From the IMG/VR virus record IMGVR_UViG_3300033977_000108, positions 1-64,000 of that record: a DNA stretch of 64,000 bases; one strand, given 5' to 3'. The translations under genes were made by a program, and so were the position numbers. Position 1 is the first letter of the stretch, and every line of letters starts with the position of its first letter. Below the pieces are notes generated by a model. The model was not told where the DNA came from, made no database searches, and saw nothing but the letters and a program-made list of their open reading frames with translations. Shown in pieces: positions 10,570 to 49,753 of the stretch.

Positions 10570-10582
10570 AGTGTTGCTCCTG

Positions 10583-22799: not shown

Positions 22800-24449
22800 C
22801 TACTTACGCTTCCAGCCCGCCGAGGTCTTCAAGGCATACAACATACCTCTAGCCTCTTTCTGGCTGGTTGTCCCTGCCAGCCTCTCAGAGTACATCAAGA
22901 GGCCGGCTTCAGACTGCGACGGATGAAAACGGATAAAGTTGCCCTTCAGGATAGCTCCTGTCGGTCCCCTGCCTTGGGTAGTCACTTCAGCCACATCACC
23001 CTTCAGCAGGTCCCTATTCCGCCACATCCAATCCCTATACTCGTCGGGGATGGCAAAACTGCCTATCTCCCCAACGCCACTGCCTGTCCTTACATCCAGC
23101 GGCTGGACAAGAATACCACCCAATGTGCCCTTATACTTGCCAGCCCCCTCAATGAAATCAAGGACTTCCACATCAATCGTATCCCTGGCCTTGCCTTTAT
23201 AAACCAGGTCTATGGCTCTGCCATCCACCGGCTTCACCATAATCCCTTCAGACCAAGGCAGCCCTCTTGGATCATTCACCACAAGCTCATAATAAGCCTC
23301 CAGTGGCATCCAGCCGGGCTTACGCTCAACGATGTGGACATGCTTGTTGAATGGCCTTATCCCAGCGACCGCTTCTTCCATCATCGCCCGCCGCTCAGAA
23401 TACGGTAAGTTACTGACATTCTTACCTTTATACTTCAGAATGTCAGTCACATAAGCCTCAATCGGCCCATGCTCCCGCTGATAACCAATAGCCTTATCAG
23501 CTCCGCTGTTCAGCAGACCGCCCAGCCTACTGGCGCCGTCCTTGTGGAACAGCTCCACTCTGAACAGAGTGCCATGCATCTCCGGCTTGAACAATAGCCG
23601 ATCCAGCAACACATGGCTCCTATTCTGCAGCCATTCAAGAGCAGGCAGCTTGAATGTATAGCATGGAACATCCCGCCAGCTTTGAAAGATAGCTCTTTCC
23701 AACCCTTCTCTGCTGGTGCTTTCAATAGCCATGGATGCCATACTACCATCCATCTTACGCTCAACGATAACTCCTTTAGGGTCAAGGCTTGCCAGCCATT
23801 CCAGTGCTTTCAGAGCAGCCTTTGGCTTGGGAACCATCACCCCTCTGTCCTTCATCCTAACCAGAAGGCCTCGTCCTTTCTCCATGCCTTCTGGCCGGCG
23901 GACAGAATACGAACCCTTGAACTCACCACGGGGTATGTTAAAATCGAACTCCCGGGTACCGGGCTTTATGCCAACAGCCACAAAGTCCCAATGCCTCCCT
24001 GCCACCTCGGCATCGTGCTGATGTATGTTCGCCTTGGCGACACTCAGCCTATCGCCAACCTTCAAGACAATGTCTTCCTTATACAAGAGCTTCTTCATGC
24101 CCTTGCCTCGGCCCTCGCCTATCAAGCCGCTGAAATCATTGACTTTATGCGGCTCGTCTTCCCCTACCAGCACAGGACTACCCGTCTTCGTAGGAAACGG
24201 CTTGGCTCCTCGACGGGGCAGCAGATGAAGCTTCTCGTAATGATTGGCACCAGGCCCACTAACCAGCCTGCCGTCTATATCGCTCTTCGACAGCAGCCTG
24301 GCAGACAATAGTCTGGTAGCAGGCTTTACTTTGACCGCGGCAACGGATGAAAGCATACCCATGCCAGCATCCCAGAAAGTGTTCCAGCATACCTTGGACA
24401 AAGCAGCCGCACCATCAAGAATAGCGGTAATTCGTTTCCTAATACCCAC
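22800..24449 (-). CDS. lig: ATP-dependent DNA ligase with LigD phosphoesterase-like N-terminal region
   Basis: ERKMDG (I), FRVELF (III), YVTDILKYKG..LPYSERR (IIIa), SEGIMVK (IV), YKGK (V), OB domain GAGKYKGTLGGILV; N-terminal HQHDA..GRHWDF. Confidence 0.88.
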   Translation of the reverse strand: MGIRKRITAILDGAAALSKVCWNTFWDAGMGMLSSVAAVKVKPATRLLSARLLSKSDIDGRLVSGPGANHYEKLHLLPRRGAKPFPTKTGSPVLVGEDEPHKVNDFSGLIGEGRGKGMKKLLYKEDIVLKVGDRLSVAKANIHQHDAEVAGRHWDFVAVGIKPGTREFDFNIPRGEFKGSYSVRRPEGMEKGRGLLVRMKDRGVMVPKPKAALKALEWLASLDPKGVIVERKMDGSMASMAIESTSREGLERAIFQSWRDVPCYTFKLPALEWLQNRSHVLLDRLLFKPEMHGTLFRVELFHKDGASRLGGLLNSGADKAIGYQREHGPIEAYVTDILKYKGKNVSNLPYSERRAMMEEAVAGIRPFNKHVHIVERKPGWMPLEAYYELVVNDPRGLPWSEGIMVKPVDGRAIDLVYKGKARDTIDVEVLDFIEGAGKYKGTLGGILVQPLDVRTGSGVGEIGSFAIPDEYRDWMWRNRDLLKGDVAEVTTQGRGPTGAILKGNFIRFHPSQSEAGLLMYSERLAGTTSQKEARGMLYALKTSAGWKRK

Positions 24450-28216: not shown

Positions 28217-28489
28217 CTAGGCTTTATCCGGCCCAAACAGACCACAGACAATCTGTGTCCATTCCAAAGGGCCGAAATAAGCATAGAGAATGTAAGCCAT
28301 CAGTGCGCTGGGGCAACTGACCCCAACCGCATCACAAGCACACCGAATGTGGGCATCAACAATCTCTTCTGTCAAATTCAACTCCTTGGCAATCGACAGA
28401 GGAGTCTGGCCTTTCATCATCATAGCCACTACCCTACATTCTGTAGCAGTCAGCGTTTTACCGCCTAACAGCAATTTAGCCTTAGCCAT
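28217..28489 (-). CDS. LuxR/sigma-region-4-type HTH DNA-binding protein
   Basis: LTATECRVVAMMMKGQT..SIAKELNLTEEIVDAHI matches the LuxR C-terminal pattern LTxRExEVL..L..G....EIA..L.LS..TV..H. Confidence 0.8.
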   Translation of the reverse strand: MAKAKLLLGGKTLTATECRVVAMMMKGQTPLSIAKELNLTEEIVDAHIRCACDAVGVSCPSALMAYILYAYFGPLEWTQIVCGLFGPDKA

Positions 28490-31400
28490 TGTTCACCTCC
28501 TTTCCGGCGTCCGGGACGCCTTGATTTAGGACTTTCAAAGGCACATACAGCCGAAGGTCAAGGGCATAAGGACTTGTCCCAGAAGACCCTATATGCCAAG
28601 CCAATGCCCCTCTCACCTCGCCGACCGCCGGGTCGGTAATCCAAGGGAATAGATGAATAAGCGTATCCTTGGTAATCCAGCCTACATGCTGGTCTGTCTC
28701 ACTGAACACCTCAACCGCGGGTTCTCCCTCATACAGAGTCGGCTTCAGTTTGACCACAGAACCCGCCATAGCAATAAACTGCCTACGAGCTTGTTCCAGT
28801 TCAGCACGCTTATCACCAGTCGCTGCCTTGAGCTTTGTCTCCCAGCCATCCACTACACGGACAGTAAGACCGGAAGACGCCCCACAAGGAGGCGTCTCCG
28901 GCTTATCACTGACCAGCAGAAAGCCATGGTCAAGAGTATACTCGCCCTCGGACAGCGGCTCAATCAGCTCACCAATAGCATTGTGAAGATGAGCTGTAGT
29001 TCCCTTGATTCTGAATGTCATACCAGTTGGGTCATAGTCCGTCTTCTCCACTACCACTTGCTCGCGGACTTGCCCATAATCATTCTCAAAGCTGTCCTTG
29101 GTAACAGCTCTGTCATACCACCTAAATGGCGTGCGCTTGGTTGTGAGCCCGCACGCGCGCAGCGCCATGATAAAGCCATCCACAGTATGCTTGCCATACA
29201 GGATGCCGTCCCGGACCTCTCTGAGGTCCATCTCAGCCCCCTCATTGCGTGGTATCTCTTTATCAGAGGTGGGATGAGGAAGATTGTTATAGATATTCCG
29301 AGCCAGAGCCACATAGACTTCGGTCGCCAGCCCGGACGCCATAATGAAGGAATGAACACGCTCCTCTGCAAAGAAATAGGCAGAGATAGCAGCCTCATCC
29401 TCGGTCATTATTACCCTGTCGCGGTGGTCTTTGTGAGCGGCAAGGAACTCATTCTTCTTCGTCTGCAGCAGGCCATTATAATAAACCTGCGCTTGATTCG
29501 CCAGGCGAGCTGCAGAATCACTGACCTGGAAGGACTCCATCTCAGGAGGCACACGCCAGATATGGCTCCAATCCTCTGCTTTGGCTTCTTCCACAGCCTG
29601 CGCATAACGATGGCGCCACGCTTCCAGCTCCGCGCTGATAGGAGTAGGAATAGGAATAGGCTCATCAGGAGTTCCCAGCCTACTGACTGGTATCCTGCCT
29701 CGCCCTTCCCAACCACCCTCCCACATCCAGGCGCCAGCCACAGGACACTCCCTCCTGAAGCTGGAACAAGCTGCCTGCTCCCTATCTATAGGCAGCCCGG
29801 TCTGTTTAGAGCTATCAATAATGCGTTGAGTCTCACCACAGACCATCGGCATCTCGGACTCCCAGAAGTCCTTCTCCATCCAGGCGATAGCCGCCTTGAT
29901 CTTCTCGTTCTGCGGCATAGCCCGGAGAGTATCCATTACCAAGCTATAGTTATTGAAGATGTCGATATACCACAGCTCAGTATTCACCGCACAACCGATG
30001 CCAAGCCTGCTCTCCTTGAGCTTGCCCAGCATATCGCAGATTACATCCTCGTCATAGCTGGGCTTCTCAATAGCCTTAGTAAAACGCCTTGGCACAGGCT
30101 CCACAACCGCTTCCTCCGGCCTGAATTTGACATTGAACGCAGGCAGAGCGCGCAGGAACGCATTGATAGCCGGGTCGAAGATGAAGATATCAGAATCATC
30201 ACAATCGCCCACATCCTGTCCCTTTACCGGCTTGGGATAATCAGGATGGATAAAGATACAAGTAGCCTCTTTGTCCAGAGCCCGCAGAGCAGGATGGCTA
30301 ATAGCATCCAGGAACCTGGCATCGTTCCTGGAACCATTTGGATTCCTGATGAGGGTGCCTTGACCAACAAAGCCACCGAAATAACACTGGCCTGGTTTCA
30401 GCACACCACCTTCCGGCTTGGGCCGGCCCCAGCCATCAAATGCCGTCGGGTCGGCAGTCAGATGACCCCTAAGAGCACAGGCTCTGAAATCGCCATGCGG
30501 GTCATCCAGCCTCGCCGGCACACGGAATCCAATCCTTGCCCGCCCGGGGTCATGGTCAAATCCCTTCATACGCAGAGCGGACAGCCGCCTGGCCCTACGA
30601 AAGCCAGGCATCCTATTCAGCCCCTTGACCCCGGACTCAAGGAGCTTCCAAACCTTCCAGTCCTCAATAGTGGCACGTATTGGCCGTATCTCAGTCTCGC
30701 CTCGCTCATCCACTATCTCCTCAAAGTCCATCGGCTTATAAAAGCCGATGGACTGCTTGAGGCCGGTAAGGTCTTCCTCTTCAAGCTCTTTGAAGATTCT
30801 GCCCATATACTCATCTGTAAGAATCTCAAAGAACTTACCGTCCAGCGCGTGAGCGAGCTCGAAATTGATGGCAGTTTGAATGTCAGTCCGTGCCGGACTG
30901 CCATGCTTCTCAGAGAGCACACCCAGGAAGACATTGCCATCCCAAGCTCTGACAGAAGACTTGGGCTCATAGACAATCAAGTCCACGTTCTTCATGTCAC
31001 GAACCACGAGGACATTTGCCTTCATCATTCCCGGGCTCATCAGGCCAGTGATGGCGAATAAATCCCCTGGACTGGCAGACTTACGATGCAGCATGCGCTT
31101 GGCAAAGCGCGCGCTGCAATAGGCCTGACCAGCTACCCTCCAATCCGGCCACCGGCCGGAAGGAGGAGCAAATAGAATATCCAAAGTCCCGCCCTCTTCG
31201 AGTTTGACTTTGATTACCTCATCAAACTCATTCAGGCGATACCGGCCCACTTCCTTGCCAAACAGGGCATAAGGATGAGGAGCCAGCAGCCTCTGCAGCC
31301 GCTTCGGGATATCCGGCTTGAACTCAGGAATATCCAAGCCAAACAGACGCCAGGCCTCCGCGCTAGGCAGATGCCTGTCAATCATCACACCGCTAAGTCC

Positions 31401-31754
31401 ATTAGGATCACGGACATAACTAACGACCCTGAACCAGCGGCTATTGTCCGCAGGAACAAACACACCTTGGGCTGACTTCAGAAAAGCCCTCGCCATTGCG
31501 AAGTTCTCTTCTGTAATGCGCTCAGCCTCAGAAGTATTGCCTATTCCTTTGGCAACAGAAAGGCGGGAATAAGGAATCCCCGCATGTTCCAGGAACGGGC
31601 TCCAGGCAGCTGGACCGATACACTTCTTCGGATCCAGTTTCTGGCCTGGAACCTGGGGCAGCAAATAGCTACACTTACCATCACTGCCCATAGAGACCGT
31701 CCACCTAAGATTAGGTGGCCTTATCACTTGTTGAATATTTGTAGGCGTTTTCAT
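28482..31754 (-). CDS. Putative single-subunit two-barrel RNA polymerase (YonO/QDE-1-like) with C-terminal HIRAN-like segment
   Basis: AGQAYCSARFAKRM (cf. DG.G.IS..LA), GMMKANVLVV (cf. G.KG.L.V), IRNP...D.R...A..HP.L..L....IF...GDCDDSDIFIFDP (cf. R.P...GGD.DGD...WD); C-terminal VKLKPTLYEGEPAVEVF...HVGWITK. Confidence 0.7.
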   Translation of the reverse strand: MKTPTNIQQVIRPPNLRWTVSMGSDGKCSYLLPQVPGQKLDPKKCIGPAAWSPFLEHAGIPYSRLSVAKGIGNTSEAERITEENFAMARAFLKSAQGVFVPADNSRWFRVVSYVRDPNGLSGVMIDRHLPSAEAWRLFGLDIPEFKPDIPKRLQRLLAPHPYALFGKEVGRYRLNEFDEVIKVKLEEGGTLDILFAPPSGRWPDWRVAGQAYCSARFAKRMLHRKSASPGDLFAITGLMSPGMMKANVLVVRDMKNVDLIVYEPKSSVRAWDGNVFLGVLSEKHGSPARTDIQTAINFELAHALDGKFFEILTDEYMGRIFKELEEEDLTGLKQSIGFYKPMDFEEIVDERGETEIRPIRATIEDWKVWKLLESGVKGLNRMPGFRRARRLSALRMKGFDHDPGRARIGFRVPARLDDPHGDFRACALRGHLTADPTAFDGWGRPKPEGGVLKPGQCYFGGFVGQGTLIRNPNGSRNDARFLDAISHPALRALDKEATCIFIHPDYPKPVKGQDVGDCDDSDIFIFDPAINAFLRALPAFNVKFRPEEAVVEPVPRRFTKAIEKPSYDEDVICDMLGKLKESRLGIGCAVNTELWYIDIFNNYSLVMDTLRAMPQNEKIKAAIAWMEKDFWESEMPMVCGETQRIIDSSKQTGLPIDREQAACSSFRRECPVAGAWMWEGGWEGRGRIPVSRLGTPDEPIPIPTPISAELEAWRHRYAQAVEEAKAEDWSHIWRVPPEMESFQVSDSAARLANQAQVYYNGLLQTKKNEFLAAHKDHRDRVIMTEDEAAISAYFFAEERVHSFIMASGLATEVYVALARNIYNNLPHPTSDKEIPRNEGAEMDLREVRDGILYGKHTVDGFIMALRACGLTTKRTPFRWYDRAVTKDSFENDYGQVREQVVVEKTDYDPTGMTFRIKGTTAHLHNAIGELIEPLSEGEYTLDHGFLLVSDKPETPPCGASSGLTVRVVDGWETKLKAATGDKRAELEQARRQFIAMAGSVVKLKPTLYEGEPAVEVFSETDQHVGWITKDTLIHLFPWITDPAVGEVRGALAWHIGSSGTSPYALDLRLYVPLKVLNQGVPDAGKEVNNG

Positions 31755-34211: not shown

Positions 34212-34685
34212 GTGACTATGGCTGTGACAACGCTTTGGTACCCAGACGGCAACCAGCACTACATAGGGCGGATTATGGACCGCCTATTTGTATCTAACAT
34301 CCATACTGCTAGGGCTTTAGCCCAGATAAACCCTTTTGGTATCCGCTTCGTGGTCAATGCTACTATGTGGCCGGTAGACTTGCCGCCTGATATCCAGGTC
34401 ATAAAACTGGACCTAAAGGACGATGCGGCCATCCCAAAGGAAGTATTATATGCTACACTAGGCTGGATGCACGAAATGATAAAGTATGACCCTGTTCTTG
34501 TTAATTGCTGGGCCGGCCGGTCGCGCTCGGCAGCCATCGTTGCGGCTTATCTTTGCCGCTGCGGTATGGACTGGGAGGAAGCCGAGAGGTTCATAAAGGA
34601 CAAATGGGTAAAGACCAATATACATCCATTGGTGGCCGCCAGCGTAAGAGAAGCTGTGAATGAAATGGCAACAGCCGCGATATAA
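34212..34685 (+). CDS. Dual-specificity (CX5R) phosphatase
   Basis: GIRFVVN, LKDD, VLVNCWAGRSRSAAIVAAYL. Confidence 0.88.
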   Translation: MTMAVTTLWYPDGNQHYIGRIMDRLFVSNIHTARALAQINPFGIRFVVNATMWPVDLPPDIQVIKLDLKDDAAIPKEVLYATLGWMHEMIKYDPVLVNCWAGRSRSAAIVAAYLCRCGMDWEEAERFIKDKWVKTNIHPLVAASVREAVNEMATAAI

Positions 34686-36097: not shown

Positions 36098-36565
36098 ATG
36101 GACCAGCAACAAATAAGCAACATCGTTAGTTCCGCTATTTCAGCAAACTTGCCAGCAGCCAATCTTTCGGCTGCTTTCGTCGGTCAGGTTGGGGAGGATT
36201 ATCAATTTACTGTATCCCCGATGCCTTTCACAACGGGGAATTCTACTACAGGCCCAATCCCACCACCTGCGACCACCTGGTATGTTATAACCACGCCCAT
36301 TCTTACAACTATGGGTGGTGCAGCTCAGAATGGTATGTGGTTACCTCCTAGCCCAGCGCCTCTACCCATAGACTCGCCTGTGCCTATGACACCGGAGCAA
36401 CTACAACAGCTTTATGAGATGCTCAAGCAACCGGTAATTATAGGAGATAAGGAACTGGAAAGGGCTGCTAAACAGGAACTACAGCGCGAGCCGACCCAAG
36501 AAGAGATGGATGAAATAAAAAGGATGATACTCGACCGACGAGATAATGGTGAACGGATTCTATAA
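36098..36565 (+). CDS. Pro/Thr-rich protein with C-terminal PxQEE motif
   Basis: C-terminus EPTQEEMDEIKRMILDRRDNGERIL. Confidence 0.7.
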   Translation: MDQQQISNIVSSAISANLPAANLSAAFVGQVGEDYQFTVSPMPFTTGNSTTGPIPPPATTWYVITTPILTTMGGAAQNGMWLPPSPAPLPIDSPVPMTPEQLQQLYEMLKQPVIIGDKELERAAKQELQREPTQEEMDEIKRMILDRRDNGERIL

Positions 36566-37095
36566 TGTCAGATATGGACTACAAGACGCCTCCTGGATGC
36601 GTACCAAAGGATGCCTATTTTCCCAATGTAATGAGCATAGTGACGGAATCGGGGAAAATGGAATACATTAAAGGCCCTGGGGTGGGGAATCCTCCGATGA
36701 ATACTTCCCATTGGGGACCAAAGGGAATTACACACCTAGCTGATTACGCAAATCCAGTGAATACTTCCCATATCTATGAGTATTGCAGCATCTGGAGACC
36801 AGCGGGACTTACAAGCTCAGCTGATTATTTAGGTCCAGCCGGAGTGACAGGCTACACAGGACCAGTTGGTGTTACTGGTTCCTTAGGTCAAACCGGAATG
36901 ATGGGATCAATAGGACCAGTTGGTGTTACTGGTACAGAGGCCTGGTTTTCTGAGATCGTATTTGAGGAAGTTTCTATAGATAAGGCGCCAGCAGGAGATA
37001 GCGGAGTGCTTGAATACATCCCATCTCAGGAAGAACTGGAAACTATACGGAGGGACATACTTATCAGGCAGTTAGACGATGAGAGATTGATTTGA
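36565..37095 (+). CDS. Protein with short collagen-like repeat and C-terminal PxQEE motif
   Basis: GPAGVTGYTGPVGVTG...; C-terminus IPSQEELETIRRDILIRQLDDERLI. Confidence 0.7.
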   Translation: MSDMDYKTPPGCVPKDAYFPNVMSIVTESGKMEYIKGPGVGNPPMNTSHWGPKGITHLADYANPVNTSHIYEYCSIWRPAGLTSSADYLGPAGVTGYTGPVGVTGSLGQTGMMGSIGPVGVTGTEAWFSEIVFEEVSIDKAPAGDSGVLEYIPSQEELETIRRDILIRQLDDERLI

Positions 37096-37901
37096 TGTTA
37101 GAGGATAAGCCAATACGAAGCTCTCCCGCCGAGACAGGTATTCAGCCGGCGCCAGAAGCCCCACCTTTAGACGCTTTGTTCAAAGCGCCGGCACCTGCCC
37201 CAGACCCAGAGCCAAAACCACCCTCTGATGACCTGACAGCTATTGTACCTATTGGTGTGCCCAAGGACTTATTGAAGCTATTGCCTATGGCAGAATTGAA
37301 TCTGTCTCCTGAACAGGCGGCTATTGTCGCGCGTTACCATGAAGCCAATGTGGTTCTTGGGGCCGCAGGCCAGATACTTATTTGTTCCGAAGCCTGCCCG
37401 TTCAAAAAGCGCTGTCCGCTCTATAAAATAGGCAAGGCTCCCTTCTGTTATCCATGTCCCTTTGAAGCGAACTATGCCGTAGAACGCTTCGCCGCTTGGT
37501 TGAAAGTCATTGTTCCGCCAGGTCAGCACATGACCGAGACCGAGCGTTCAACAATCGCAACATTGACTTATTTAGACATAGACGAATTGCGTTGTCGCAA
37601 CATCTTAGCCGACGCCGAGAATGCCAAGCTAACATCCTTAGTTGTCAGGGACTTAGACATAGAAACCAAGACGCCCCTGGCCTATGAAGAAGTAATAGCC
37701 GCCAACTCAGAAAGACTAAGCAAAATCCTCTATGAGAGGATGACCATCCTCAACGCTTTCGAGCTAACCCCAAGAGAAAAGACCCGCAAGAACAAATTCG
37801 CAAAGAAGACCGGCAGCGACCTGGCATCTAGACAATCCGCGGCAGCCGATAGAATAAGACAGACATCTATCGACGCCGAGATTGTCGAAGAGTCAGAATA
37901 A
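37092..37901 (+). CDS. Cys-cluster helical protein (candidate terminase small subunit)
   Basis: CSEACPFKKRCP..CYPCPFE; basic C-terminal helix; TerS assignment rests on position only. Confidence 0.45.
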   Translation: MMLEDKPIRSSPAETGIQPAPEAPPLDALFKAPAPAPDPEPKPPSDDLTAIVPIGVPKDLLKLLPMAELNLSPEQAAIVARYHEANVVLGAAGQILICSEACPFKKRCPLYKIGKAPFCYPCPFEANYAVERFAAWLKVIVPPGQHMTETERSTIATLTYLDIDELRCRNILADAENAKLTSLVVRDLDIETKTPLAYEEVIAANSERLSKILYERMTILNAFELTPREKTRKNKFAKKTGSDLASRQSAAADRIRQTSIDAEIVEESE

Positions 37902-40261
37902 TGCCACTTTTAGCTTTCACTTCACGTTTTCTCAAAGCCAATCCGACCTTTATAAAGGACATTACAGGTGTGCCTATTCAATTCCCGGGCTTGCCGGAAA
38001 GTGGAGAGGCTCAGCGCCGTCGCAGGCAATATACGGATTTTGGTTCTGGATGGCAGGGTTTCCTAAAACAAGAGGGAGTTAACGAGAAGAAAACAAAGAG
38101 GAAAAAAGCAGGGAAATCGCTCATAAGGATTGCTGCTGAGCTTAATGCGCTGCAGGTAGCTCTTTTTCCTCTGGAATCCGCAATGTCTGCGGCTATGTTT
38201 CTACAAAATCGGCCTTTTTTCAAGTTGCTATTTGATTGGAGAAAGGTCGGAAGCGAAGAAGGTAAGATAGCTTGGACGCAACTTGCTTCGCAGCATTATG
38301 GTTTGGATAGGAAGGCAAACTTATATCCTAGTGCTTTTGGTGGCCTTGAAACTTCCAATTTAATTGAAACTGGTAAATATAAACCTTATGTCAGTTTTCT
38401 AAGAAAGTTCTCACAATGGAACTATCGTTTACTTGGCGGTAATTATGCATACCGCGGTGTGCTAGGAAAACAAGCCGAGGACATATTACAGTCTGTTGAG
38501 AAAATAGGCAAGGCCACTGTTGATTTGAATGCTTTATCGGCTTGGTCAACTAATCCGGTGGTGGCAGGTCGGTTTGCTGCGAGTTCCAATCCAGATCCAG
38601 CGCTCAGTTGGTTGGCTACGGATGCTGGTGTTGTAATAAAGCGCCGTGTATCTGCGAAAGATGTGTGGTTTTTCTCTCCAACAATTGGTGGTTCTCCATC
38701 CGAAGTAGTAGTTGGGACTGCAACTGGTAAGATAGAAGTTACGGCTAAAGATATATTCAAACTGCCACGCGGAAGTGCAGAAGCGCCGTTCGGTGTATTC
38801 GGCCCTACATTTTATAAAGATGCTATGCGATGGAAGCTGCATCTTTGGGGAGATTGGAATCCAAGAAGTCTAGGATTTGCTCACATTTTACCGACGGCTA
38901 TTGTTGCCGGAGCCGCGTATTTCTTGTATAAGCACGGCAGGAACAAATCTCTCAACGAAATAGAAGCATTATCACACGGTGGTGAGTCTGCAAGTTCAAG
39001 ACGTAAGCATTCTGACTTTGGATCGGGATGGCGTGGATTATTAGAGGCATTAGCCACACGTGGTAGAATTGCATTGAATTTAGGTCTAACGGGACCTACA
39101 GGTTTAACTTACACAGTAAAAGAATTGGATGCCTTGAGACTGGCTCAGAGCCTGGCAATTAGACGCAGTGGTCTTTCAGCAGCTAGAATCCAGCGTGTTT
39201 CAAAAGATATTCTGAGATTAGCCCCAAGTCAGTTCTCTAATATAAGCGAAATAGAAGCTATACGACCTAATAGGTTGGGCTATGAAAGGATTAGGGCTCT
39301 AAACAGATGGTCACGCGCAACAGGAATGCCTGGTATTTTATTGAATGAAATACAAATGAAGGCCATGACCCCAGGTACGGTAGCAGAAATACTGAGACAC
39401 GAAGAAATACATGCTGCCCAATTTGCCGCCTATGGACATCCATTCTTTGCAAAACTAAGGAAGGAAACCGGTGGTATTCTTAATGAATTGATCTATGCTG
39501 TCCAACAGCCAAAGGCACAGGCTTATGCTCGCAAACAGGCAGGATTCATGTCACGGGGAAGAGCGGAGATGCCATGGATACCTAAGCTAGACCCAGAACG
39601 CATGGCTGAGGACATCTTAGTTCGATATGTGGATCTCACAAGCTCTTTTTACACACGACAAGGCATTAATCTTATAGAATCTAAGCAGTTCGGGACGTTG
39701 AATAGGATGCTTGAATCCGAGCCTATTGCTTATCATTTCCAGTCGAATCCACAAATAATGAAAGAGATGGAAAAAGCTGGTATAGAAACTACCAGAACTG
39801 CAACGCAGAAACTGAGACATAGCCTGCAGGAAAAGGGGATTGCCCCTCAACTTAGACGTAGATTGACAGATTTCGGCTCCGGCTGGCAAGGCATTTTACG
39901 CGCGGTTAAAGGCTTTCGGCAAGAAGGCGTGGTCTTCAAAGTACATCCTGAGAACTTCCTGCGCAAAGTCGGCGGCAATGTAGGAGTAAAAAGAAGCGTA
40001 ATAGAGGAACTTAAAGACAAGCTGCTCAGAGGAATACAGCTGGACCCAGGAGAGATACATTTTGATGAGTTTGGCAATGTGATAGGAGCCGAGGGACGGC
40101 ACCGGGCAACGGCTTATATGGAACTGGGCAGACAGATGCCTGTCCGTCGCATGGTAAGAGCTTCTGACATCATGCGCACTGGAGAGGGCTATGATGCAAC
40201 TACTATGCTTTCACGGCGGGTCCATGTGAGAGGTTCAAGGGAAATGTCCCACGCCCTGTAA
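37901..40261 (+). CDS. Modular polyvalent-like protein: ART-like, HExxH zincin and ParB-like domains separated by DFGSGW repeats
   Basis: YRG..SAWSTNPVVAGRFA..SEVVV; ILRHEEIHAAQ; AEGRHRATAY; DFGSGW at aa 46, 372 and 657. Confidence 0.75.
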   Translation: MPLLAFTSRFLKANPTFIKDITGVPIQFPGLPESGEAQRRRRQYTDFGSGWQGFLKQEGVNEKKTKRKKAGKSLIRIAAELNALQVALFPLESAMSAAMFLQNRPFFKLLFDWRKVGSEEGKIAWTQLASQHYGLDRKANLYPSAFGGLETSNLIETGKYKPYVSFLRKFSQWNYRLLGGNYAYRGVLGKQAEDILQSVEKIGKATVDLNALSAWSTNPVVAGRFAASSNPDPALSWLATDAGVVIKRRVSAKDVWFFSPTIGGSPSEVVVGTATGKIEVTAKDIFKLPRGSAEAPFGVFGPTFYKDAMRWKLHLWGDWNPRSLGFAHILPTAIVAGAAYFLYKHGRNKSLNEIEALSHGGESASSRRKHSDFGSGWRGLLEALATRGRIALNLGLTGPTGLTYTVKELDALRLAQSLAIRRSGLSAARIQRVSKDILRLAPSQFSNISEIEAIRPNRLGYERIRALNRWSRATGMPGILLNEIQMKAMTPGTVAEILRHEEIHAAQFAAYGHPFFAKLRKETGGILNELIYAVQQPKAQAYARKQAGFMSRGRAEMPWIPKLDPERMAEDILVRYVDLTSSFYTRQGINLIESKQFGTLNRMLESEPIAYHFQSNPQIMKEMEKAGIETTRTATQKLRHSLQEKGIAPQLRRRLTDFGSGWQGILRAVKGFRQEGVVFKVHPENFLRKVGGNVGVKRSVIEELKDKLLRGIQLDPGEIHFDEFGNVIGAEGRHRATAYMELGRQMPVRRMVRASDIMRTGEGYDATTMLSRRVHVRGSREMSHAL

Positions 40262-40307: not shown

Positions 40308-40964
40308 ATGCCAGCATTTGCTTCTTTAACTAGAGCTTTTGGACAGTTTCGTGGGTTATTCAATGACATTGGTGCAGCTGCATCTGCCGCGGGTCGAGAT
40401 CTGCTCACTTCAACCAGAGTCGCAAAGTCTTCCACTATTGCAGATATGGAGCCGTTCTTGGCAAGGGCGGTGGGCACACCAACCCGTGCCAATATATTGG
40501 GCGCAGCGAGAGGCATGGGACGCACAATCTGGGGGAACCCAGCAACACGTACTATGGCCGTCGGCGCTGGTGCGGGCGCGGGAATCGGTGGTCTATACGG
40601 CCTGAGTTCTGATAGACATCCCTATTTAAAGGGCTATGTGGGCTCGAACCTGGGTGCGCTTGGAGGACTCACAGCGGGTGCTGCGTTTGCTGGACGTGGG
40701 GGCATGGCAGCTGCCGCAAGACTCGGTTTTGGAGCACGGCACGTTGGAGCGGCTGCCGAGACTATAGGGCAAATGGGTTTTGATTTTGCTGCCGCTGCCA
40801 GGGCGGGGCGTGTAGGTATACCACCTATCCAACCGTTTCAGATGGGCTTCACCTTCGGTCAATATGGCATGCATGTACCAGGAGCCCCTCGAACGGCTCC
40901 GGGCTTATGGGGTAGCACCGTAAATAGGCTTGGGAATATAGTTGGACGCATGCGAGGCTTATAA
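40308..40964 (+). CDS. Gly/Ala-rich glycine-zipper protein (candidate ejection/pilot protein)
   Basis: GAGAGAGIGGLYG, GSNLGALGGLTAGAAFAG. Confidence 0.65.
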   Translation: MPAFASLTRAFGQFRGLFNDIGAAASAAGRDLLTSTRVAKSSTIADMEPFLARAVGTPTRANILGAARGMGRTIWGNPATRTMAVGAGAGAGIGGLYGLSSDRHPYLKGYVGSNLGALGGLTAGAAFAGRGGMAAAARLGFGARHVGAAAETIGQMGFDFAAAARAGRVGIPPIQPFQMGFTFGQYGMHVPGAPRTAPGLWGSTVNRLGNIVGRMRGL

Positions 40965-41065: not shown

Positions 41066-41851
41066 ATGCCACCTATTCAGAACTATGCAAAAGCATTCTG
41101 GGGCTTTTTTAGGTCATCCATCAAGTCAGAGGAGCCTATCTTCCGCCTTGCTGCGGGGGCAGGCTATGGTTTGAGCGCAGCCCATGTAGGAGACCGCCTT
41201 TTCATTGGTGCGGCGGGCGGCGCCGCATTAGGCGGTATCTTTGGAGACCGCGAGGCTCCTTTATCTACAAGATTGCTCCACGGAGCCGCTCTGGGTGCTG
41301 GCATTGGTCTTTTTATAGCGCCGATAGGTTATGGTATTGGAAAAGCCGGTCAATGGACCTATAGGACGGGGCGCTGGTCTACTGGCTTTGCTGGCCGTCG
41401 TATGGCCGCAGCAGGACGAAGATGGATGGCTGGCACAGGTCCTTGGTATAGCCCAGGCAGGGCATATAAAGCATTTGGTACTTTTGGCTTGATGATGGGC
41501 GCTGGTGCCATTGCTGGCGGAGCGATTGGCGCCTATGAAGGGCATCCAGTCCGGGGCGCCCTTATTGGCGCTGGTGCTGGATTGGGCCTCCGAGTTGGCA
41601 CTGGCATAGCTCGCCAATGGTCGCAGTCTGGTTTTCTGGGTAAAACGGCCCTTACGGCTGGTGGCGTAGGCCTTGCCTATGGTATCACATCTGCTCTACA
41701 GGGACCGGATTTATCCCAATCGGTGGCCCTGGCCCCTGATGTGGCCGGCTTGCCCGAATATGGGCCGCCAGGCTCTGGAGTGCGTGCCAGAATGGATGCT
41801 ATGCAGGCTTCCGGTGACATCGTATTAGGACTTCACAATCGGCGTAGATAA
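41066..41851 (+). CDS. Gly-zipper membrane-associated virion protein
   Basis: GAAGGAALGGIFG, GAALGAGIG, GAGAIAGGAIG; C-terminal A.GD.VL.LHNRR. Confidence 0.7.
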   Translation: MPPIQNYAKAFWGFFRSSIKSEEPIFRLAAGAGYGLSAAHVGDRLFIGAAGGAALGGIFGDREAPLSTRLLHGAALGAGIGLFIAPIGYGIGKAGQWTYRTGRWSTGFAGRRMAAAGRRWMAGTGPWYSPGRAYKAFGTFGLMMGAGAIAGGAIGAYEGHPVRGALIGAGAGLGLRVGTGIARQWSQSGFLGKTALTAGGVGLAYGITSALQGPDLSQSVALAPDVAGLPEYGPPGSGVRARMDAMQASGDIVLGLHNRRR

Positions 41852-42417
41852 TGCCTAACATCGTTCCTCTTTTAGCACTCTCAGATGACGTTGTGCGTCT
41901 AGCCTATCAGACGCACGAATGGACTGGCTGGGATTATAATCGTCAGCGTTTTCGCCGGCCGGAGTCAGATGAATATGATTGGGATGAATTACGCTGGGCC
42001 CAGGGCGCTTTGACAAATCTAACACCAGCCAGCTTCAGCGTAAAGCACCGCCCCAGAGGCGAATTTATAAGCAGAACAATCGGTACTACGACTTCTCTTT
42101 GTATTATGTTGCAGGCGCCTTTTGCTATGGCACCACTACTGCGTATGGGCATTCCAATGCTGGGCATAACCGGCTCAAAAGCAGTTTCAATGTTTGCGAC
42201 TCTATATCCAGCTATTGGTCTGGGGAACTTTGCAACCCGCGCCGTTCGCTACATGGCCAACTACGGCTATCATATGAGGCGGATTGAAATGGGCGGGGAT
42301 TATGAGGATAGCGCCACTGCCGCGGCTTTACGCTTTGCCGCCCTTCGGGACATGAGCGCGGCCCACGGCATAGCAAGAAGCTATTTGGGGCGTGAAGCTC
42401 TATATTTGAACAGATAA
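41851..42417 (+). CDS. Hypothetical virion protein
   Basis: TAATG coupling; amphipathic C-terminal half. Confidence 0.65.
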   Translation: MPNIVPLLALSDDVVRLAYQTHEWTGWDYNRQRFRRPESDEYDWDELRWAQGALTNLTPASFSVKHRPRGEFISRTIGTTTSLCIMLQAPFAMAPLLRMGIPMLGITGSKAVSMFATLYPAIGLGNFATRAVRYMANYGYHMRRIEMGGDYEDSATAAALRFAALRDMSAAHGIARSYLGREALYLNR

Positions 42418-42839: not shown

Positions 42840-43451
42840 ATGCCATTCGATCAGAATTTCAGCAGTCAACCACCTTATGCCGGGAGCGGTTCGCTCGGGC
42901 CCACGCCGCCAAATGTAACATTACCGGCTACACAAGATTATCCTGTGCCGCCTAATGTATCAAATTTGCCTTATAATCCGCCAGATTTACCAGAAGGTTT
43001 TGCCAATGAAGGCGAGACCTATTTCCCAACCACAAGTGCGGTATATGGAATTCCTCTGCAATGGAAATCGTCCGACCTTCCTTCGGAGGGTGGTGGATAT
43101 GCAGAAGCAATCAAGTTAGTTGACAAGGCCTCTTCTAATACCACCAGTAACCCGGCAGCCATTGGTGCACGCGGCGTACAGGTTATCGTTCAATTCTTTC
43201 CTACTATGTCTGGCGCTTATAGTTTGACGGCAGCAGCCATGTCTTGTAATGTTGCTTTGTATACTTACAATCCAGAGACCAGCGTGACCACAGAAGTTAC
43301 TTCATGGCTCGGCGTAACGCCAGGCGATGACTTGAATGATATGTTTGTCGGCAATCTGGAAGAGGTAGACCTAAATGGACTGCCTTTATCAATAAGTGTG
43401 TCTAGTATTGTGGGAGGCAGCGTTTCGGTATATGTCGTTCCGCTTTCCTAA
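42840..43451 (+). CDS. Hypothetical virion structural protein
   Basis: SD GAGGAG; Pro-rich N-terminus, beta-rich C-terminus. Confidence 0.65.
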   Translation: MPFDQNFSSQPPYAGSGSLGPTPPNVTLPATQDYPVPPNVSNLPYNPPDLPEGFANEGETYFPTTSAVYGIPLQWKSSDLPSEGGGYAEAIKLVDKASSNTTSNPAAIGARGVQVIVQFFPTMSGAYSLTAAAMSCNVALYTYNPETSVTTEVTSWLGVTPGDDLNDMFVGNLEEVDLNGLPLSISVSSIVGGSVSVYVVPLS

Positions 43452-45403
43452 TGGAAACAGCGAGAGCCAGTTTTGAGCACCAGATGATAGAACAAGAATT
43501 CCTTGCCCCAGTCATAAAACGAAGCGAAAAAGACCCAGGCCTTATTCGCCGGATGCAAAATCCTATCTGCAAAGCCTGTCATGCAGAATACCAGAAGAAA
43601 TATCCAGGTTCTCCGTTTAAAATAATCTGCAATGGTATCCCCGATGAGCAGGATTTCAAAGAGGCCTCTGAAAAGACGGGTATGCCTTATGAACAGGTTC
43701 GGGAGGTGATGGATTTACAATACTGGACTGAAAGGCACATGAAGGTAACCGATGAAAGAGGCGATGTAATATCTTTCCGTGCCCGCGATTATCAAGTGCC
43801 TATTCTCCGCTGTACGGCGAATAGGAAGGTCAATCGCTGCGGTCGCGGATTAGGAAAAACACTCCTTAGCACTTTTGAAGAATTGCATTGGGCATTGAAC
43901 AATAAGAACTTTCCTATCCTTGTTGTCTCCCCCGCCAAAGCCCAGGCCAAGAAATGGTATGATGACATTCTGTGGGCAGCGGACCAGGATCCCGAGATTT
44001 CAGAATCCATTATACAAAGGCTACAGCAGCCTTTTTATCTCATCCGTTTCTCTAATGGCTCAAGTATCTCTATTTTTACGGCCGGTTCAGAATCAGGTCG
44101 CGGTGCCGGTTCAATCCGTTCTCAAAGCCCTAGGCGCGTCCGATTAGAGGAACAGGACGGCTTGAATGAAGCCGATTACAAGCCCATACAGCCCTTATTC
44201 CGCCGCTATAAAAACAGCACCGTCCATGGACAAAGTACCCCATGTGGAGACCGGAGCTTCTTTTGGAAGATGTGCTGCCGGTTCAAGGACTATAAGGAAT
44301 TCCATGTTCCCATTACGCGGCACCCGGACTGGGGTAAGGAAATGGAGGAAGCCTGCCGGAGAGAAGCTGGGACTTACATCAACTTCCAGCATGAATTCCT
44401 GGCAGAATTCGGAGACCCAGAGGAGGGCGTATTCAAAGCTCGGTTCATTGATGCCTCGCGTCGGCCCTATTACTACAAAGATTGTAAGCATGTCCCCGGA
44501 CGCGCTTACTTCCTCGGTGTAGATTGGAATGGCGAAGGCACTGGTATGCGGGCGCGCGTTCTTGAGTTTAACCCGGAGGATGAAATCCGCCGTGTAGTGG
44601 ATACCGCCCTGGTATCAGGCGAAAAATCCACCACTATGGATGTTTTATACACCATACGCAATCTAAACCGAAAGTGGCACTGTGAAGAGATTTATCTTGA
44701 TTATGGCTATGGAGCATTCCAAGCCGGCATGTTGAGGGAAATGGGCAATCCGGCGATAATAACTTCGCCTGATGACTTGCGTCTCCGATTTATCAAGACT
44801 GTGGATTTCGGCGCCAATCTGAAAACCAATAAGCTAATCCCAAAGCGAGGTCGTCCAAAGTTCCTGAAGATAGACGAGGAAAAGAAGGCTACCAAGCCAT
44901 TCATGGTTGAAAGTGCGGTGATGGTATTAGAGAATGATAAGTTCAAGTTTGCCGAATCTGATGCCACCCTCGATTCCGAGTTCCGAGCCTATAAGGTCAA
45001 GACATGGAGCCTTCATGGCCACGCCAATACTTATACAGGCGGCAAAATAGGAGACCACGACCTTACGGCTACAATGCTGGCCATGATGGCTATTGATTTG
45101 AAGTATGGTGCCCTTTCAGCCACGGCGCCTGTTCATCAACCTGTGATGCGTAATGTTTCCACAATGACGCAGGATGGTATGCCAGTGCGCGCGCGTGCTG
45201 ATTCTGTTACGCCCCGGGCCGAAGGTAATCCAGATTCTCCATTTACACCATCCAAGCAGCCAAGAATAGTAGCGGCAACCAGGCAAGCCGTTGTAGTCGT
45301 ACCGCCCAGGGCCTCGCCGACTTCGCGTGCAGGGCGTTCAGTATTTCCTTCACGCACGCGATTACGCTCACCTTTTGTCCGCGCGCCTTATAGGGGATTC
45401 TAA
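43451..45403 (+). CDS. terL: Terminase large subunit
   Basis: Adenine-binding RDYQ, Walker A GRGLGKT, coupling motif QSTP, FxxEFLAEF, RNase H-like LGVDWN, YLDYG, GDHD. Confidence 0.92.
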   Translation: METARASFEHQMIEQEFLAPVIKRSEKDPGLIRRMQNPICKACHAEYQKKYPGSPFKIICNGIPDEQDFKEASEKTGMPYEQVREVMDLQYWTERHMKVTDERGDVISFRARDYQVPILRCTANRKVNRCGRGLGKTLLSTFEELHWALNNKNFPILVVSPAKAQAKKWYDDILWAADQDPEISESIIQRLQQPFYLIRFSNGSSISIFTAGSESGRGAGSIRSQSPRRVRLEEQDGLNEADYKPIQPLFRRYKNSTVHGQSTPCGDRSFFWKMCCRFKDYKEFHVPITRHPDWGKEMEEACRREAGTYINFQHEFLAEFGDPEEGVFKARFIDASRRPYYYKDCKHVPGRAYFLGVDWNGEGTGMRARVLEFNPEDEIRRVVDTALVSGEKSTTMDVLYTIRNLNRKWHCEEIYLDYGYGAFQAGMLREMGNPAIITSPDDLRLRFIKTVDFGANLKTNKLIPKRGRPKFLKIDEEKKATKPFMVESAVMVLENDKFKFAESDATLDSEFRAYKVKTWSLHGHANTYTGGKIGDHDLTATMLAMMAIDLKYGALSATAPVHQPVMRNVSTMTQDGMPVRARADSVTPRAEGNPDSPFTPSKQPRIVAATRQAVVVVPPRASPTSRAGRSVFPSRTRLRSPFVRAPYRGF

Positions 45404-47539: not shown

Positions 47540-49753
47540 ATGCCACGCACCAAGAAAATGACTGAAAAAGAGGAACAGAAAGCGCAGCGTTTAGACCGCC
47601 TAGCTCGCTTCAAGCGCGGTAAATTTGTCTCTCCTATGGCTGTAGCAGCCGTGCCGAAATCAAAAGGCCTGTTGCCAGAGCCGAGAATGGATAACTGGGG
47701 AGTGCGGGCTATTCAGAAGCCCCTTACTTGGTCGCCCCTTACCGAACGGATAAGACTAGCCACGCGTATAAAAGATAAAGCGGCTACCCAAGAACAGAGA
47801 GACAAGACTGGTGGTTTTTACTTGAAAGATGTAGGCTCTTCTGACCTGCCAAAAGTATTTGCCAAGGTCGCCGCCAAAATACAGAACGAACAGGATTACA
47901 TGAACTCGTACTGGGGCTGGATTGGCATTATACAGCCGGAGTATGAGCTCCTAGAACCATGGACCATCTTTGATACCGAAGCTTATCTGCGTGTTGCCAC
48001 GGAGCGGAAACAAAGCCTGATGTTTAGGAACGGCTTCAAAGTCATGGGCGATAATGAGACCTTCCGCCAATACATAGAGAAGCGATTTGCCCAGATTGCC
48101 TATTTCATGGATCTCACGACCGAGAACTTCTTCAAGAGGATACTGATCCAACTTTTGGTCTCTTCAAACTGTATAGTATTGAAAATACGTGATGAGAATG
48201 CTTCCGGCGGCACGGCTAACGACAAGAATAAGAATAAGAAACCTGTGGCTGCCTATACCATTGTCCCATCCCATACTATTTATCCCTACTTGGATGGCAA
48301 GGGCCGAATAGAGAAGTGGCGCAGGTTTTTCGCCGACGGCCGCACATTTGAAGATTATCCGGTAGAAGATATCATTCATTTTTACTGGGACAAAAAGGAA
48401 GGCCACATCTTTGGCACTCCTCGGACAGTTGCTATCCGCGATGACATTTTGGCTTTGCGCCGGCTGGAAGAGAATGTGGAACTGTTGATGATACATCACC
48501 TGTTCCCATTATTTCATGTGGCAGTGGGCACCCCAGACCAGCCCGCGGATTACGAAGTGGAAGGCGTCAGCGAGGTAGATTTCGTCCGTAATGCCATTGA
48601 ACAGATGCCCAAAGAAGGTATGCTGGTCACCGATGAGCGCGTGCGGGTGGAAGCCGTAGGTGCCAAAACCACTGCCCTGGAATATGACAAGATTGTCCAG
48701 CACTATAAGACCCGTGTTTTCACAGGGTTAGGGGTAAGCGGCGTGGATATGGGAGAGGGGGATACCTCTAATAGAAGTACCGCTGAAACAGTATCCCAGA
48801 ACTTGAAGGATAGCGTAAAAGCTGACCTGGACTGGTTCTGTGGGCAGATTCAGATGTTGATGATAAAGGAATTCTTCCAAGAGGCGCCATTTGACCTTAG
48901 CGTTCAGAATGCCGTTGCTGATGTCCATCTGGCGTTCTCTGAGATAGATGTGGATGGGATGATAAAGACCGAGAACCATCATCTCAATCTGTATAACAGC
49001 CATTTGATTGATGAGACCGAAGCCCGTCAAAGGCTCGGCCGCCAGCCATTGACTGAAGAGCAGCGCAAGAATACGCATTATCATCGCCATATCCTGGATT
49101 TGGCTCTCAGGACGGCCAAGGCGCGCGCCCAATATGCCTATGAATACGCTATTCCAAGAGGCGAAGGCACGCCTGGCGGCAAGAGTACAGGAGGTGGCGG
49201 CAAAGGCTCGCCAGCAAAGAAAGCCACGCCCCGGTACAAAAGTCCAAAAGTGGCCGAGCAGCCTGAAAATCAGCATGGAAGGAACCTAGACCCTCATCGT
49301 GCTAGGTCCAGTACAAGTCTAGAATCCCTCCGCGATCTTCTTTTGGCCCTGCGCGCTGCTTTGGATAAGGAAGGCCGGCTGACCTTGGATGAATGGAGAA
49401 ACAATGCCGAGAAGGCTATCTATCTCTATTTCAGTGATTTGATGGGTGAGAACGCCTATACTAACCAGGAGCGAATGGAACAAGTCCGAGATAGGGCTCT
49501 GGCACTTATCCGTGAAACACATAATCCAGACCTGATTTCGGTGATTTTAGATGATGCGGAAGTAGATCTTCTGCAAGAGGAAACTGAGACACATGGCGAA
49601 CAAGAAACAGATGCCCGACCCGCTATTGAACCTGCACAAGGCGCCATTACCGCAGGTGATTCAGAACCTGGGCAAAGCCTCGGGGATGAATCCACAACAA
49701 CGGAAGGAACGAGTTCTGGAGTTGGCACTGGGGCCGAAACGAACGACTCCTAA
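47540..49753 (+). CDS. Portal protein
   Basis: Y...DIIHF....G..FG.P.., HYK..VF.GLGVS..D.G.G..SNRSTA; position between terL and protease. Confidence 0.85.
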   Translation: MPRTKKMTEKEEQKAQRLDRLARFKRGKFVSPMAVAAVPKSKGLLPEPRMDNWGVRAIQKPLTWSPLTERIRLATRIKDKAATQEQRDKTGGFYLKDVGSSDLPKVFAKVAAKIQNEQDYMNSYWGWIGIIQPEYELLEPWTIFDTEAYLRVATERKQSLMFRNGFKVMGDNETFRQYIEKRFAQIAYFMDLTTENFFKRILIQLLVSSNCIVLKIRDENASGGTANDKNKNKKPVAAYTIVPSHTIYPYLDGKGRIEKWRRFFADGRTFEDYPVEDIIHFYWDKKEGHIFGTPRTVAIRDDILALRRLEENVELLMIHHLFPLFHVAVGTPDQPADYEVEGVSEVDFVRNAIEQMPKEGMLVTDERVRVEAVGAKTTALEYDKIVQHYKTRVFTGLGVSGVDMGEGDTSNRSTAETVSQNLKDSVKADLDWFCGQIQMLMIKEFFQEAPFDLSVQNAVADVHLAFSEIDVDGMIKTENHHLNLYNSHLIDETEARQRLGRQPLTEEQRKNTHYHRHILDLALRTAKARAQYAYEYAIPRGEGTPGGKSTGGGGKGSPAKKATPRYKSPKVAEQPENQHGRNLDPHRARSSTSLESLRDLLLALRAALDKEGRLTLDEWRNNAEKAIYLYFSDLMGENAYTNQERMEQVRDRALALIRETHNPDLISVILDDAEVDLLQEETETHGEQETDARPAIEPAQGAITAGDSEPGQSLGDESTTTEGTSSGVGTGAETNDS
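49456..49469 (+). promoter_or_regulatory. CTATACTAACCAGG motif copy 3 (internal to portal, upstream of the head genes)
   Basis: Exact 14-mer, 300 nt before the protease gene. Confidence 0.5.

Follow-up and report, generated by a model that had tools for sequence, protein, structure and literature searches.

A conserved spacer repeated ahead of unrelated modules in a multi-module protein of an uncultivated giant phage: an apparently undescribed inter-module signal

The DNA analyzed here (the window) is a stretch of 64,000 nucleotides (nt), namely the first 64 kb of the 204,633-bp viral contig IMGVR_UViG_3300033977_000108. Its source is an uncultivated tailed phage of about 205 kb, termed a giant phage. 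On the + strand, upstream of the terminase, portal and capsid genes, lies a gene (37901..40261, stop codon included) that starts with ATG and encodes, without internal stop, a protein of 786 amino acids (aa) made of three cassettes. Each cassette consists of one copy of a conserved motif, called hereafter the spacer, and of a module that follows it. The comparison of this protein with its relatives showed that the motif is real and widespread, and that it is a signal between modules, apparently not described before, in a family of phage polyvalent proteins specific to one clade.

The protein opens with a propeptide-like leader of 27 aa (37901..37981). In 17 of the 120 motif proteins presented below, the motif likewise stands inside the first 40 residues. 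Motif copy 1 (37982..38059, aa 28-53; 64 bits with the hidden Markov model (HMM) of the motif) has a canonical C-terminal half (RRxxTDFGSGWQG) and a degenerate N-terminal half. It precedes module 1, which resembles ADP-ribosyltransferases (ART; 38072..38875, aa ~58-325), and a hydrophobic, transmembrane-like helix (38876..38929, aa 326-343) placed immediately 5' of motif copy 2. The latter is the fullest copy (38933..39037, aa 345-379, 66 bits) and ends in NEIEALSHGGESASSRRKHSDFGSGWRG. Next come module 2, a conserved HExxH module (39053..39823, aa ~385-641) defined by a 16-sequence alignment (A7) and by the core of an AlphaFold2 model, then motif copy 3 (39815..39892, aa 639-664, 56 bits), and module 3, which is ParB/sulfiredoxin-like (39908..40171, aa ~670-757). 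A conserved tail (40172..40258, aa 758-786), with M-x-(S/T)-G-E-G followed by G-(S/A)-R-x-M-S-x-A-L at the C-terminus, closes the protein. Thus laid out, the gene appears to encode a "beads-on-a-string" multi-effector protein of three spacer-plus-module cassettes and a tail, in which the activities of the modules are to be taken as leads.

A preliminary description of the window had claimed that a motif of about 26 aa occurs three times in this protein and that it is conserved as protein and not as DNA. Both claims were confirmed. The DFGSGW core was found in the intact open reading frame (ORF) at nt 38036, 39014 and 39869 (aa 46, 372 and 657), without any further site in the six frames of the 64-kb window, and by chance a protein of the same composition would be expected to contain about 9e-7 position triples with an identical 6-mer. 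The copies are not covered by a direct DNA repeat and differ at synonymous positions (GAT/GAC, TTT/TTC, GGT/GGA/GGC, TCT/TCG/TCC), from which it follows that the motif is conserved as protein. The 26-aa pattern was fully matched by copies 1 and 2, but copy 3 has R instead of I/F at the first position. In addition, the module residues cited in that description were located where expected: YRG at aa 184-186, SAWSTNPVVAGRFA at aa 213-226, SEVVV at aa 267-271, HEEIH at aa 500-504 and AEGRHRATAY at aa 730-739. A twin-arginine (Tat) signal was considered and rejected, as the RR pair is not followed by a hydrophobic region.

With the window protein as query, 1.84 billion representative proteins were searched exhaustively by HMMER; 134 matched, and 120 of these carry the motif. 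These 120 proteins (up to 2418 aa) contain 357 copies, from one to six per protein. The full element extends over about 36 aa, FSGKDDxYNTIEGLxHGGxAxxxR[KR]xxTDFGSG[WY]xG, and the copies of the window are partly degenerate versions of it. Its most conserved columns are G13, G18, R24, F30, G31 and S32 (92-99% over the 357 copies); column 28 is T or S in 93% of the copies, column 25 is K or R in 74%, and a His, an Asp and a Ser are each conserved inside the element. Motif sub-types can be told apart, one with FSGKDD..NTIEGL and one with AHxPxIEGL. Pattern scans of IMG/VR with the back-translated motif revealed it in about 30 further viral contigs. Among the first nine viral matches of such a scan, one (L004) was discarded as a chance match by HMM.

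The segments between the copies are domain-sized (median 222 aa, interquartile range 172-277). When the modules were grouped by coverage-filtered community clustering, the segments fell into about 146 families, shuffled among the proteins. Those that could be named are protein-kinase/ABC1-like (51 modules), DEDD-exonuclease-like (N-terminal), staphylococcal nuclease (SNase) and, weakly, ATP-grasp, to which four families with an x-H-E-R-x-H box are added. The proposal, made beforehand, that the motif borders variable domains in homologues is therefore upheld, with 120 proteins, 357 copies, shuffled domain-sized modules and the same genomic slot. A hydrophobic 19-mer was found upstream of 103 of 340 motif copies, compared with 27 of 339 control positions (about 30% vs 8%), and copy 2 of the window is among those that have one. 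The idea that the HExxH module is a constant of the whole family was abandoned, since the module is missing from other fetched loci and the conserved-HExxH module is present in 24 of the 120 motif proteins.

Copies located within one protein share identical codons at about half or fewer of their identical residues. Their similarity within a protein is 0.61, against 0.57 between proteins, a difference that lies about 8 standard deviations above label shuffles. Since the codons have diverged and the likeness within a protein barely exceeds that between proteins, the motif must be old and maintained by selection on the peptide. The same two comparisons, of codon usage and of copy similarity, led us to reject a DNA repeat or a recent gene conversion as the origin of the copies.

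The nearest relatives of the window are L040, a 210-kb contig whose large terminase (TerL) and portal are 61% and 58% identical, and L044, with TerL identities ranging from 57 to 61%. In the same slot, both encode a protein of 310-332 aa in which the motif, at the N-terminus, is followed by the HExxH module and then by the tail. Judged by this comparison, the window gene is a core of the L040/L044 type to which two cassettes were added, the ART-like one before it and the ParB-like one after it, both of them carrying a motif copy. Because the window has three motif-plus-module units and its nearest relatives only one, the cassette idea gains direct evolutionary support, and the modular cassette architecture of the preliminary description is supported by the added modules, each with its motif copy. 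In the single-module relatives, the motif is kept where nothing needs separating, which fits a tag or a propeptide.

The C-terminal tail is also found on proteins with differing last modules (P0003, P0004, P0010, P0015, P0019, P0021, P0025, P0048, P0056, P0057, P0128 and others). Two types can be distinguished, M-x-S-G-E-G...G-(S/A)-R-x-M-S-x-A-L in the sub-clade of the window and an N-G-G-K-G-H box near the end in the main group. It was further observed that the polyprotein and three Gly-rich neighbours each carry a conserved, family-specific C-terminal peptide (e.g. ...G-S-R-x-M-S-x-A-L, ...G-L-H-N-R-R-R, ...G-R-E-A-x-x-L-N-R). The conserved tails constitute a second signal, reminiscent of cargo-loading or assembly tags.

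The AlphaFold2 prediction of the whole protein from its single sequence was unusable (predicted local distance difference test, pLDDT, of 34). With an alignment, a model was obtained that covers aa 318-700, i.e. module 2 with motif copies 2 and 3. Both copies have pLDDT values below 50, although most rows of the alignment include the motif, and neither of them docks on module 2. Given this predicted disorder and the lack of docking, the spacer behaves in the model as a short linear motif in a flexible linker, and not as a folded domain.

The three modules belong to unrelated families (M26, M7 and M9), so that at least two disparate domains are joined in one polypeptide, as in polyvalent proteins, their activities being putative. 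The preliminary description had named them ART-like, zincin and ParB/Srx-like. For module 1, the candidate ART residues are R185 (38453-38455), S213 in LSAWS (38537-38539) and E268 in SEVVV (38702-38704). In the three members of the family (window, P0003 and P0005), Y-R-G, L-S-x-W-(S/T) and E-x-V-x-G are invariant and follow one another in the order of the R, S and E motifs of R-S-E ADP-ribosyltransferases; 28 aa separate R from S and 55 aa separate S from E, and a single Glu takes the place of E/Q-x-E. The Pfam DRAT model matched P0005 only, at residues 128-177 (YRG..SLSSW..FA, i.e. the R and S motifs), below threshold (E=0.034/0.0099, 13.8-15.5 bits against a cutoff of 25). No match to module 1 was found among PDB sequences. 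A profile search for further relatives gave P0005 only, and contig scans of IMG/VR and JGI metagenomes brought nothing new. The R, S and E conserved in three of three members and the sub-threshold DRAT match to that region give the ART-like label weak support.

Module 2 contains HEEIH (39398-39412), an upstream WSxxTG box and, downstream, Glu607 (39719-39721). W-S-x-x-T-G, R-H-E-x-I-H and the invariant E607 are conserved between this module and 15 aligned relatives. In the 16 sequences, E184 and H187 of the HExxH (numbers that differ from the aa 500-504 of the protein) are invariant and H183 is present in at least 90%. The AlphaFold2 core is confident and mostly helical (pLDDT 75-98, predicted template-modelling score 0.67); in this model the HExxH lies inside a predicted helix (174-192) preceded by a strand (161-165), so that a helical HExxH and a candidate third ligand are both present, as in zincins. 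When compared by Foldseek with the PDB and BFVD, however, the model gave nothing better than E=0.35 and matched neither a zincin nor any other fold, and its weak sequence matches were to SprT-like in Pfam (E=0.03, below the cutoff) and, as best PDB profile match, to the DinB-like protein 2f22 (E=0.034). With a confident model that matches no fold and with weak profiles, the name zincin is so far unjustified, although the HExxH and the downstream Glu on which it was based are conserved.

In module 3, the GRHRA box is located at 40088-40117, and G-R-H-R-A..A is invariant in 16 of 16 aligned homologues, in keeping with the G-x-x-R/H-R-x-x-A box that comes after a beta-strand segment in the ParB/sulfiredoxin superfamily. 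Its top PDB profile matches are sulfiredoxin 6ky4 (E=0.47) and SbnI (E=0.74-0.75); they are non-significant and are aligned on the GRHRA box. No match was found in Pfam. The ParB/Srx-like designation is thus consistent with the invariant box and with the nature of these top matches. All three module identities are regarded as leads only.

The gene is part of a + strand block (34.2-58.5 kb) that comprises a DSPc phosphatase, a collagen-like protein, a 269-aa protein, the motif protein, three Gly-rich proteins, the large terminase (43451-45403, 650 aa; PHROG E=1e-18), the portal (47540-49753; PHROG E=3e-43), a post-portal protein of 764 aa adjoining the portal (49769-52063), the major capsid protein, a lysozyme-domain protein and a spanin-like protein. 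It is co-directional and tightly packed with the terminase, portal and capsid genes, with overlapping start and stop codons; its own ATG shares a nucleotide with the stop codon of the gene before it (TAATG). In about 20 loci, over the genes that each fetched stretch reaches, we recovered the order 269-aa gene, motif protein, Gly-rich proteins, terminase, portal; the terminases of these phages are only about 30% identical. The terminase, portal and major capsid genes thus lie downstream on the same strand in conserved synteny, which is the portal-terminase setting of polyvalent proteins.

The upstream neighbour (37092..37901, + strand) is translationally coupled to the polyprotein gene by a stop/start overlap. 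No family match was found for its 269-aa product, in which the N-terminus is rich in Pro and Ala and a box rich in Cys, C-x-x-x-C-P...C-P...C-x-x-C-P, is present. It occurs together with the motif protein in at least seven loci: in L002, L003, L007, L011, L020 and L023 the homologue is placed immediately 5' of the motif protein, and in L040, where it is also upstream, two genes intervene. A partner role, for instance as chaperone or small terminase, is conceivable for this protein. On the other side, three Gly-rich hydrophobic proteins (40308-40964, 41066-41851 and 41851-42417, + strand) have conserved C-termini specific to each family. The same three families occur 3' of the motif protein in L037, L007, L020, L012 and L016, and L002 has only two Gly-rich ORFs there; the similarity of the window proteins to their L040 and L044 counterparts is 38-45%. 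In P0005 and P0117, a Gly-rich module of the 41851 type is fused to the polyprotein behind a motif copy, and by this fusion the fates of the Gly-rich protein and of the polyprotein are linked.

Several observations were made on other genes of the block. A dual-specificity phosphatase of the DSPc type (34212-34685, + strand, E=7e-9) opens it and is conserved in L040 (6491-6982); it is found beside a family with many kinase-like modules and with a [KR]-x-x-[T/S] site in the motif. Two genes 5' of the polyprotein, a 176-aa protein with a collagen-like G-x-x repeat (36565-37095, + strand) matches tail-fibre and collagen-like minor tail PHROGs (E~1e-6), and stop/start overlaps run throughout this stretch. 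The terminases of L039 (12061-15102, 1013 aa) and L044 (6382-9327, 981 aa) are enlarged by an intein/LAGLIDADG insertion, which the terminase of the window does not have. In the post-portal protein, the N-terminal domain is conserved (35-38% identity among clade members, and 68% in L040 over the 155 aa covered), a K-x-G-T-F-C-G-P-N-R-S-F-P-V-P-D box matches phrog_16160, and the C-terminal half, which is long, acidic and helical, looks like a scaffold.

Elsewhere in the window, the strand switches near 33-34 kb. The - strand carries, close together at 3904-6780, an RNA ligase (PF09414, E=1e-19) and a polynucleotide kinase-phosphatase (E=1e-18), i.e. a T4-like tRNA-repair pair countering host anticodon nucleases. 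A metallophosphoesterase (9868-10650), a peptide deformylase (12186-12833, E=5e-21) and a protein with a weak likeness to ATP-dependent DNA ligases (22800-24449) lie on the same strand. An ORF of 1090 aa without Pfam match (28482-31754, - strand) is overlapped by an opposite-strand ORF of 802 aa (28653-31061), which is probably spurious.

The whole window protein gave nothing significant in Pfam, PHROGs, PDB sequences and NCBIfam, and the motif itself is absent from Pfam, PHROGs and NCBIfam; no Pfam model, those of polyvalent-protein peptidases, ART and ParB included, came above threshold on the whole protein or on the modules (E up to 1-10). Among 50,697 GenBank phage records searched by tblastn and megablast, there was no match for the protein, for its 20-kb region, for a relative or for a consensus-like motif peptide. 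A scan of 185,579 GTDB genomes for the DNA pattern of the motif returned six matches, all due to chance by HMM. A word-indexed search with the window protein retrieved only the protein itself, and in the literature library that was searched the motif strings led to unrelated papers only. The source annotations of family members read "hypothetical" or "thermonuclease" only. At least two members are already in NCBI assemblies, P0020 (L039, 4656-9665; GCA_024449895.1, contig JAANSX010662040.1) being one of these members. Its contig has 77 kb and the assembly over 660,000 contigs, so that the phage probably entered a large (meta)genome project as a passenger.

Modules that are otherwise unrelated, and phages with terminases of only about 30% identity, share a strongly conserved spacer, which for this reason is presumably read by a conserved partner. 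We favour, with a probability of about 0.45, the reading in which the spacer is a processing or sorting signal recognized by a conserved factor acting in trans, most likely a maturation protease that would release effector modules delivered by the virion. The enzyme, a maturation protease of the phage or else a conserved host protease, would cleave at, or right beside, the invariant T-D-F-G-S-G-(W/Y) block, thereby stripping the short N-terminal leader and freeing the modules as separate proteins. This cleavage would take place in the prohead, and the modules would reach the host together with the DNA. Prohead processing and delivery are suggested by the position of the gene in the head/packaging block and by its fusion link to the Gly-rich hydrophobic proteins, which may be of the kind that virions contain internally or eject. 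We infer the cleavage and the nature of its protease, as well as packaging and ejection. The preliminary description, in which the repeat was a cleavage or capsid-targeting tag of separately released injected effectors, is supported in part, namely for the module borders and the cassettes, with its module names as leads.

Several points weigh against a maturation protease that releases modules. Family scans detected no protease family in the 49769-52063 product or elsewhere in the window, and the suggestion of the preliminary description that the 49769 product is a protease was not borne out. The known prohead proteases have capsid, scaffold or portal proteins among their substrates as well (PMC10052503), whereas the motif is confined to one gene: sequence and HMM scans did not find it in any other ORF of the window, including those of the capsid, portal and post-portal proteins. 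Compared with prohead sites, the spacer is a 36-aa element repeated within that one gene and present nowhere else in the window. An N-terminal peptide of the T4 type, with a site shared with other head proteins, is thus matched in its layout by the N-terminal copy (aa 28-53) and contradicted by the restriction of the motif to the polyprotein. Furthermore, 18 of the 237 inter-motif segments are shorter than 50 aa, so that some copies are nearly in tandem, where a pure separator would gain little, and in most family members the N-terminal module has no motif ahead of it. In the region 5' of the terminase that holds the polyprotein gene, a separate transcription unit could come to its end. Finally, the motif family is known from sequences alone.

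Other explanations have to be weighed against these facts. An unlikely but serious one is that the protein stays intact and that each spacer copy docks on a conserved partner (capsid interior, portal, scaffold, DNA, membrane or host protein), several copies giving avidity or a fixed array of modules. A conserved stretch of 36 aa is indeed far longer than typical cleavage sites, and the near-tandem copies, the retention of the motif in single-module relatives and the predicted disorder, which is frequent for docking motifs, would all be compatible with it; moreover, the virion RNA polymerase of phage N4 is a polyvalent protein that is packaged unprocessed (PMC5512222). Docking nevertheless does not account for copies placed so regularly at each border between modules, at distances of domain size, for new modules that bring a copy along, or for the short N-terminal leader that precedes copy 1. 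Processing in cis, in which the motif would be cut by a module of the protein itself (HExxH in the sub-clade of the window) or autocatalytically, without a dedicated trans protease, seems improbable. It would account for the HExxH module being the constant core of this sub-clade, always with a motif in front, for the x-H-E-R-x-H box common to four HExxH families (M7, M14, M25 and M28), and for the limitation to one gene of the window of a motif that holds a conserved His, Asp and Ser; autoprocessing has been proposed for the peptidase domains of polyvalent proteins (PMC5512222). It is difficult to reconcile with the small share of motif proteins that have a conserved-HExxH module, with the model, in which neither motif copy docks on that module and whose fold matches no known peptidase, and with the size of a disordered 36-aa peptide, which is too small for known autoproteolytic folds. 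A related proposal does without any protease: the spacer would be an autonomous self-separating element, either a self-cleaving peptide or a prokaryotic counterpart of viral 2A "skipping", which would make several proteins from one phage gene and could be placed ahead of any cargo. The restriction of the motif to one gene, the lack of a detected protease, its conservation independently of the modules and its exit-tunnel length make this proposal compatible with the data; we consider its probability to be slight.

Two further views concern translation and regulation. The motif, about as long as the ribosome exit tunnel, might be a nascent-chain element that pauses or skips there, so that a module folds or a helix inserts first; its W/G-rich C-terminal block resembles arrest peptides such as SecM, and in about 30% of the copies a hydrophobic helix ends some 30 residues before the F-G-S block. 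Such a role is very improbable, for the helix is missing at 70% of the copies, both halves of the motif are evenly conserved and prokaryotic 2A-like skipping is not known. Alternatively, the [KR]-x-x-[T/S] of columns 25-28, similar to a kinase consensus, could be a site of phosphorylation or of another modification, written by the kinase-like modules and reversed by the phage phosphatase, that controls activity or release. The high frequency of T/S and K/R at these columns, the 51 Pkinase/ABC1-like modules and the DSPc gene conserved in L040 speak for it, but kinase modules are missing from the window protein and its sub-clade, and conservation peaks on F-G-S-G and two glycines rather than on the basic/hydroxyl pair; there is little chance that this is the function of the motif. 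Lastly, the protein might act inside the cell as an early or middle host-takeover polyprotein, possibly anchored in the membrane by its hydrophobic helices, the proximity of the terminase being incidental. Hydrophobic helices ahead of about 30% of the motif copies, Gly-rich neighbours that resemble membrane proteins, a position upstream of, and not within, the recognized head genes, and the lack of a virion annotation from PHROGs would agree with this view. We judge it improbable in view of the co-directional, tight packing with terminase, portal and capsid genes through overlapping start and stop codons, of a synteny strictly kept across phages with such divergent terminases, and of an enzyme mix (nucleases, kinase, ART-like, ParB-like) that matches packaged polyvalent effectors (PMC5512222).

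If the spacer is a processing or loading signal, as in the reading that we favour, it would represent a rule by which a large group of big uncultivated phages puts together varying sets of enzymes directed at the host and delivers them, new modules (nucleases, kinases, ART-like, ParB-like) being simply added with a copy of the signal. It would also provide a sequence handle for phage effector cargo in metagenomes, i.e. whatever stands between two motif copies, as well as a testable substrate for a phage protease or receptor, and possibly a portable tag to load or release proteins in phage-based tools.

The arrangement can be compared with several known systems. RNA-virus polyproteins with protease sites or 2A peptides similarly hold units in one chain with a repeated conserved sequence at the borders; they are eukaryotic systems with an identified protease or with ribosome skipping, and to our knowledge nothing comparable has been established for tailed phages. 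Encapsulin cargo-loading peptides are short, disordered, conserved terminal peptides that load diverse enzymes into an HK97-fold shell. The C-terminal tails of the motif family and of the Gly-rich neighbours are formally similar to them; there is no sequence relationship, and encapsulin peptides are neither internal repeats nor cleaved.

Closer to the window protein are the prohead proteases of T4, phiKZ and SPN3US, which strip N-terminal propeptides from packaged ejection proteins; in T4 these propeptides direct proteins into the core of the prohead, and several cuts are possible in one protein (PMC10052503). The layout of an N-terminal peptide, as in the propeptides removed by T4 gp21, phiKZ gp175 and SPN3US gp245, is seen again with copy 1 of the window protein and in the single-module relatives. 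The sites of these proteases differ from the spacer in that they comprise three residues (L/I-x-E; A/S/G-x-E), occur also in capsid, scaffold and portal proteins, and belong to systems with one gene per effector. The closest likeness in composition is to the polyvalent proteins of phages and conjugative elements defined by Iyer, Burroughs, Anand, de Souza and Aravind in 2017, in which peptidase, ParB and ART domains come together and for which packaging, possible processing and injection have been predicted (PMC5512222). Both sets of proteins join unrelated effector domains in one chain, share the HExxH, ParB-like, ART-like, nuclease and kinase themes, and occur in portal-terminase phages. The motif family differs by its conserved spacer, its fixed genomic slot and its C-terminal tail, and no member of it was found in the GenBank phages or in GTDB. 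The 2017 paper defines no inter-domain signal, and the word "linker" is absent from it (PMC5512222). The spacer would thereby fill a gap in the polyvalent-protein concept, which predicted processing without a defined site.

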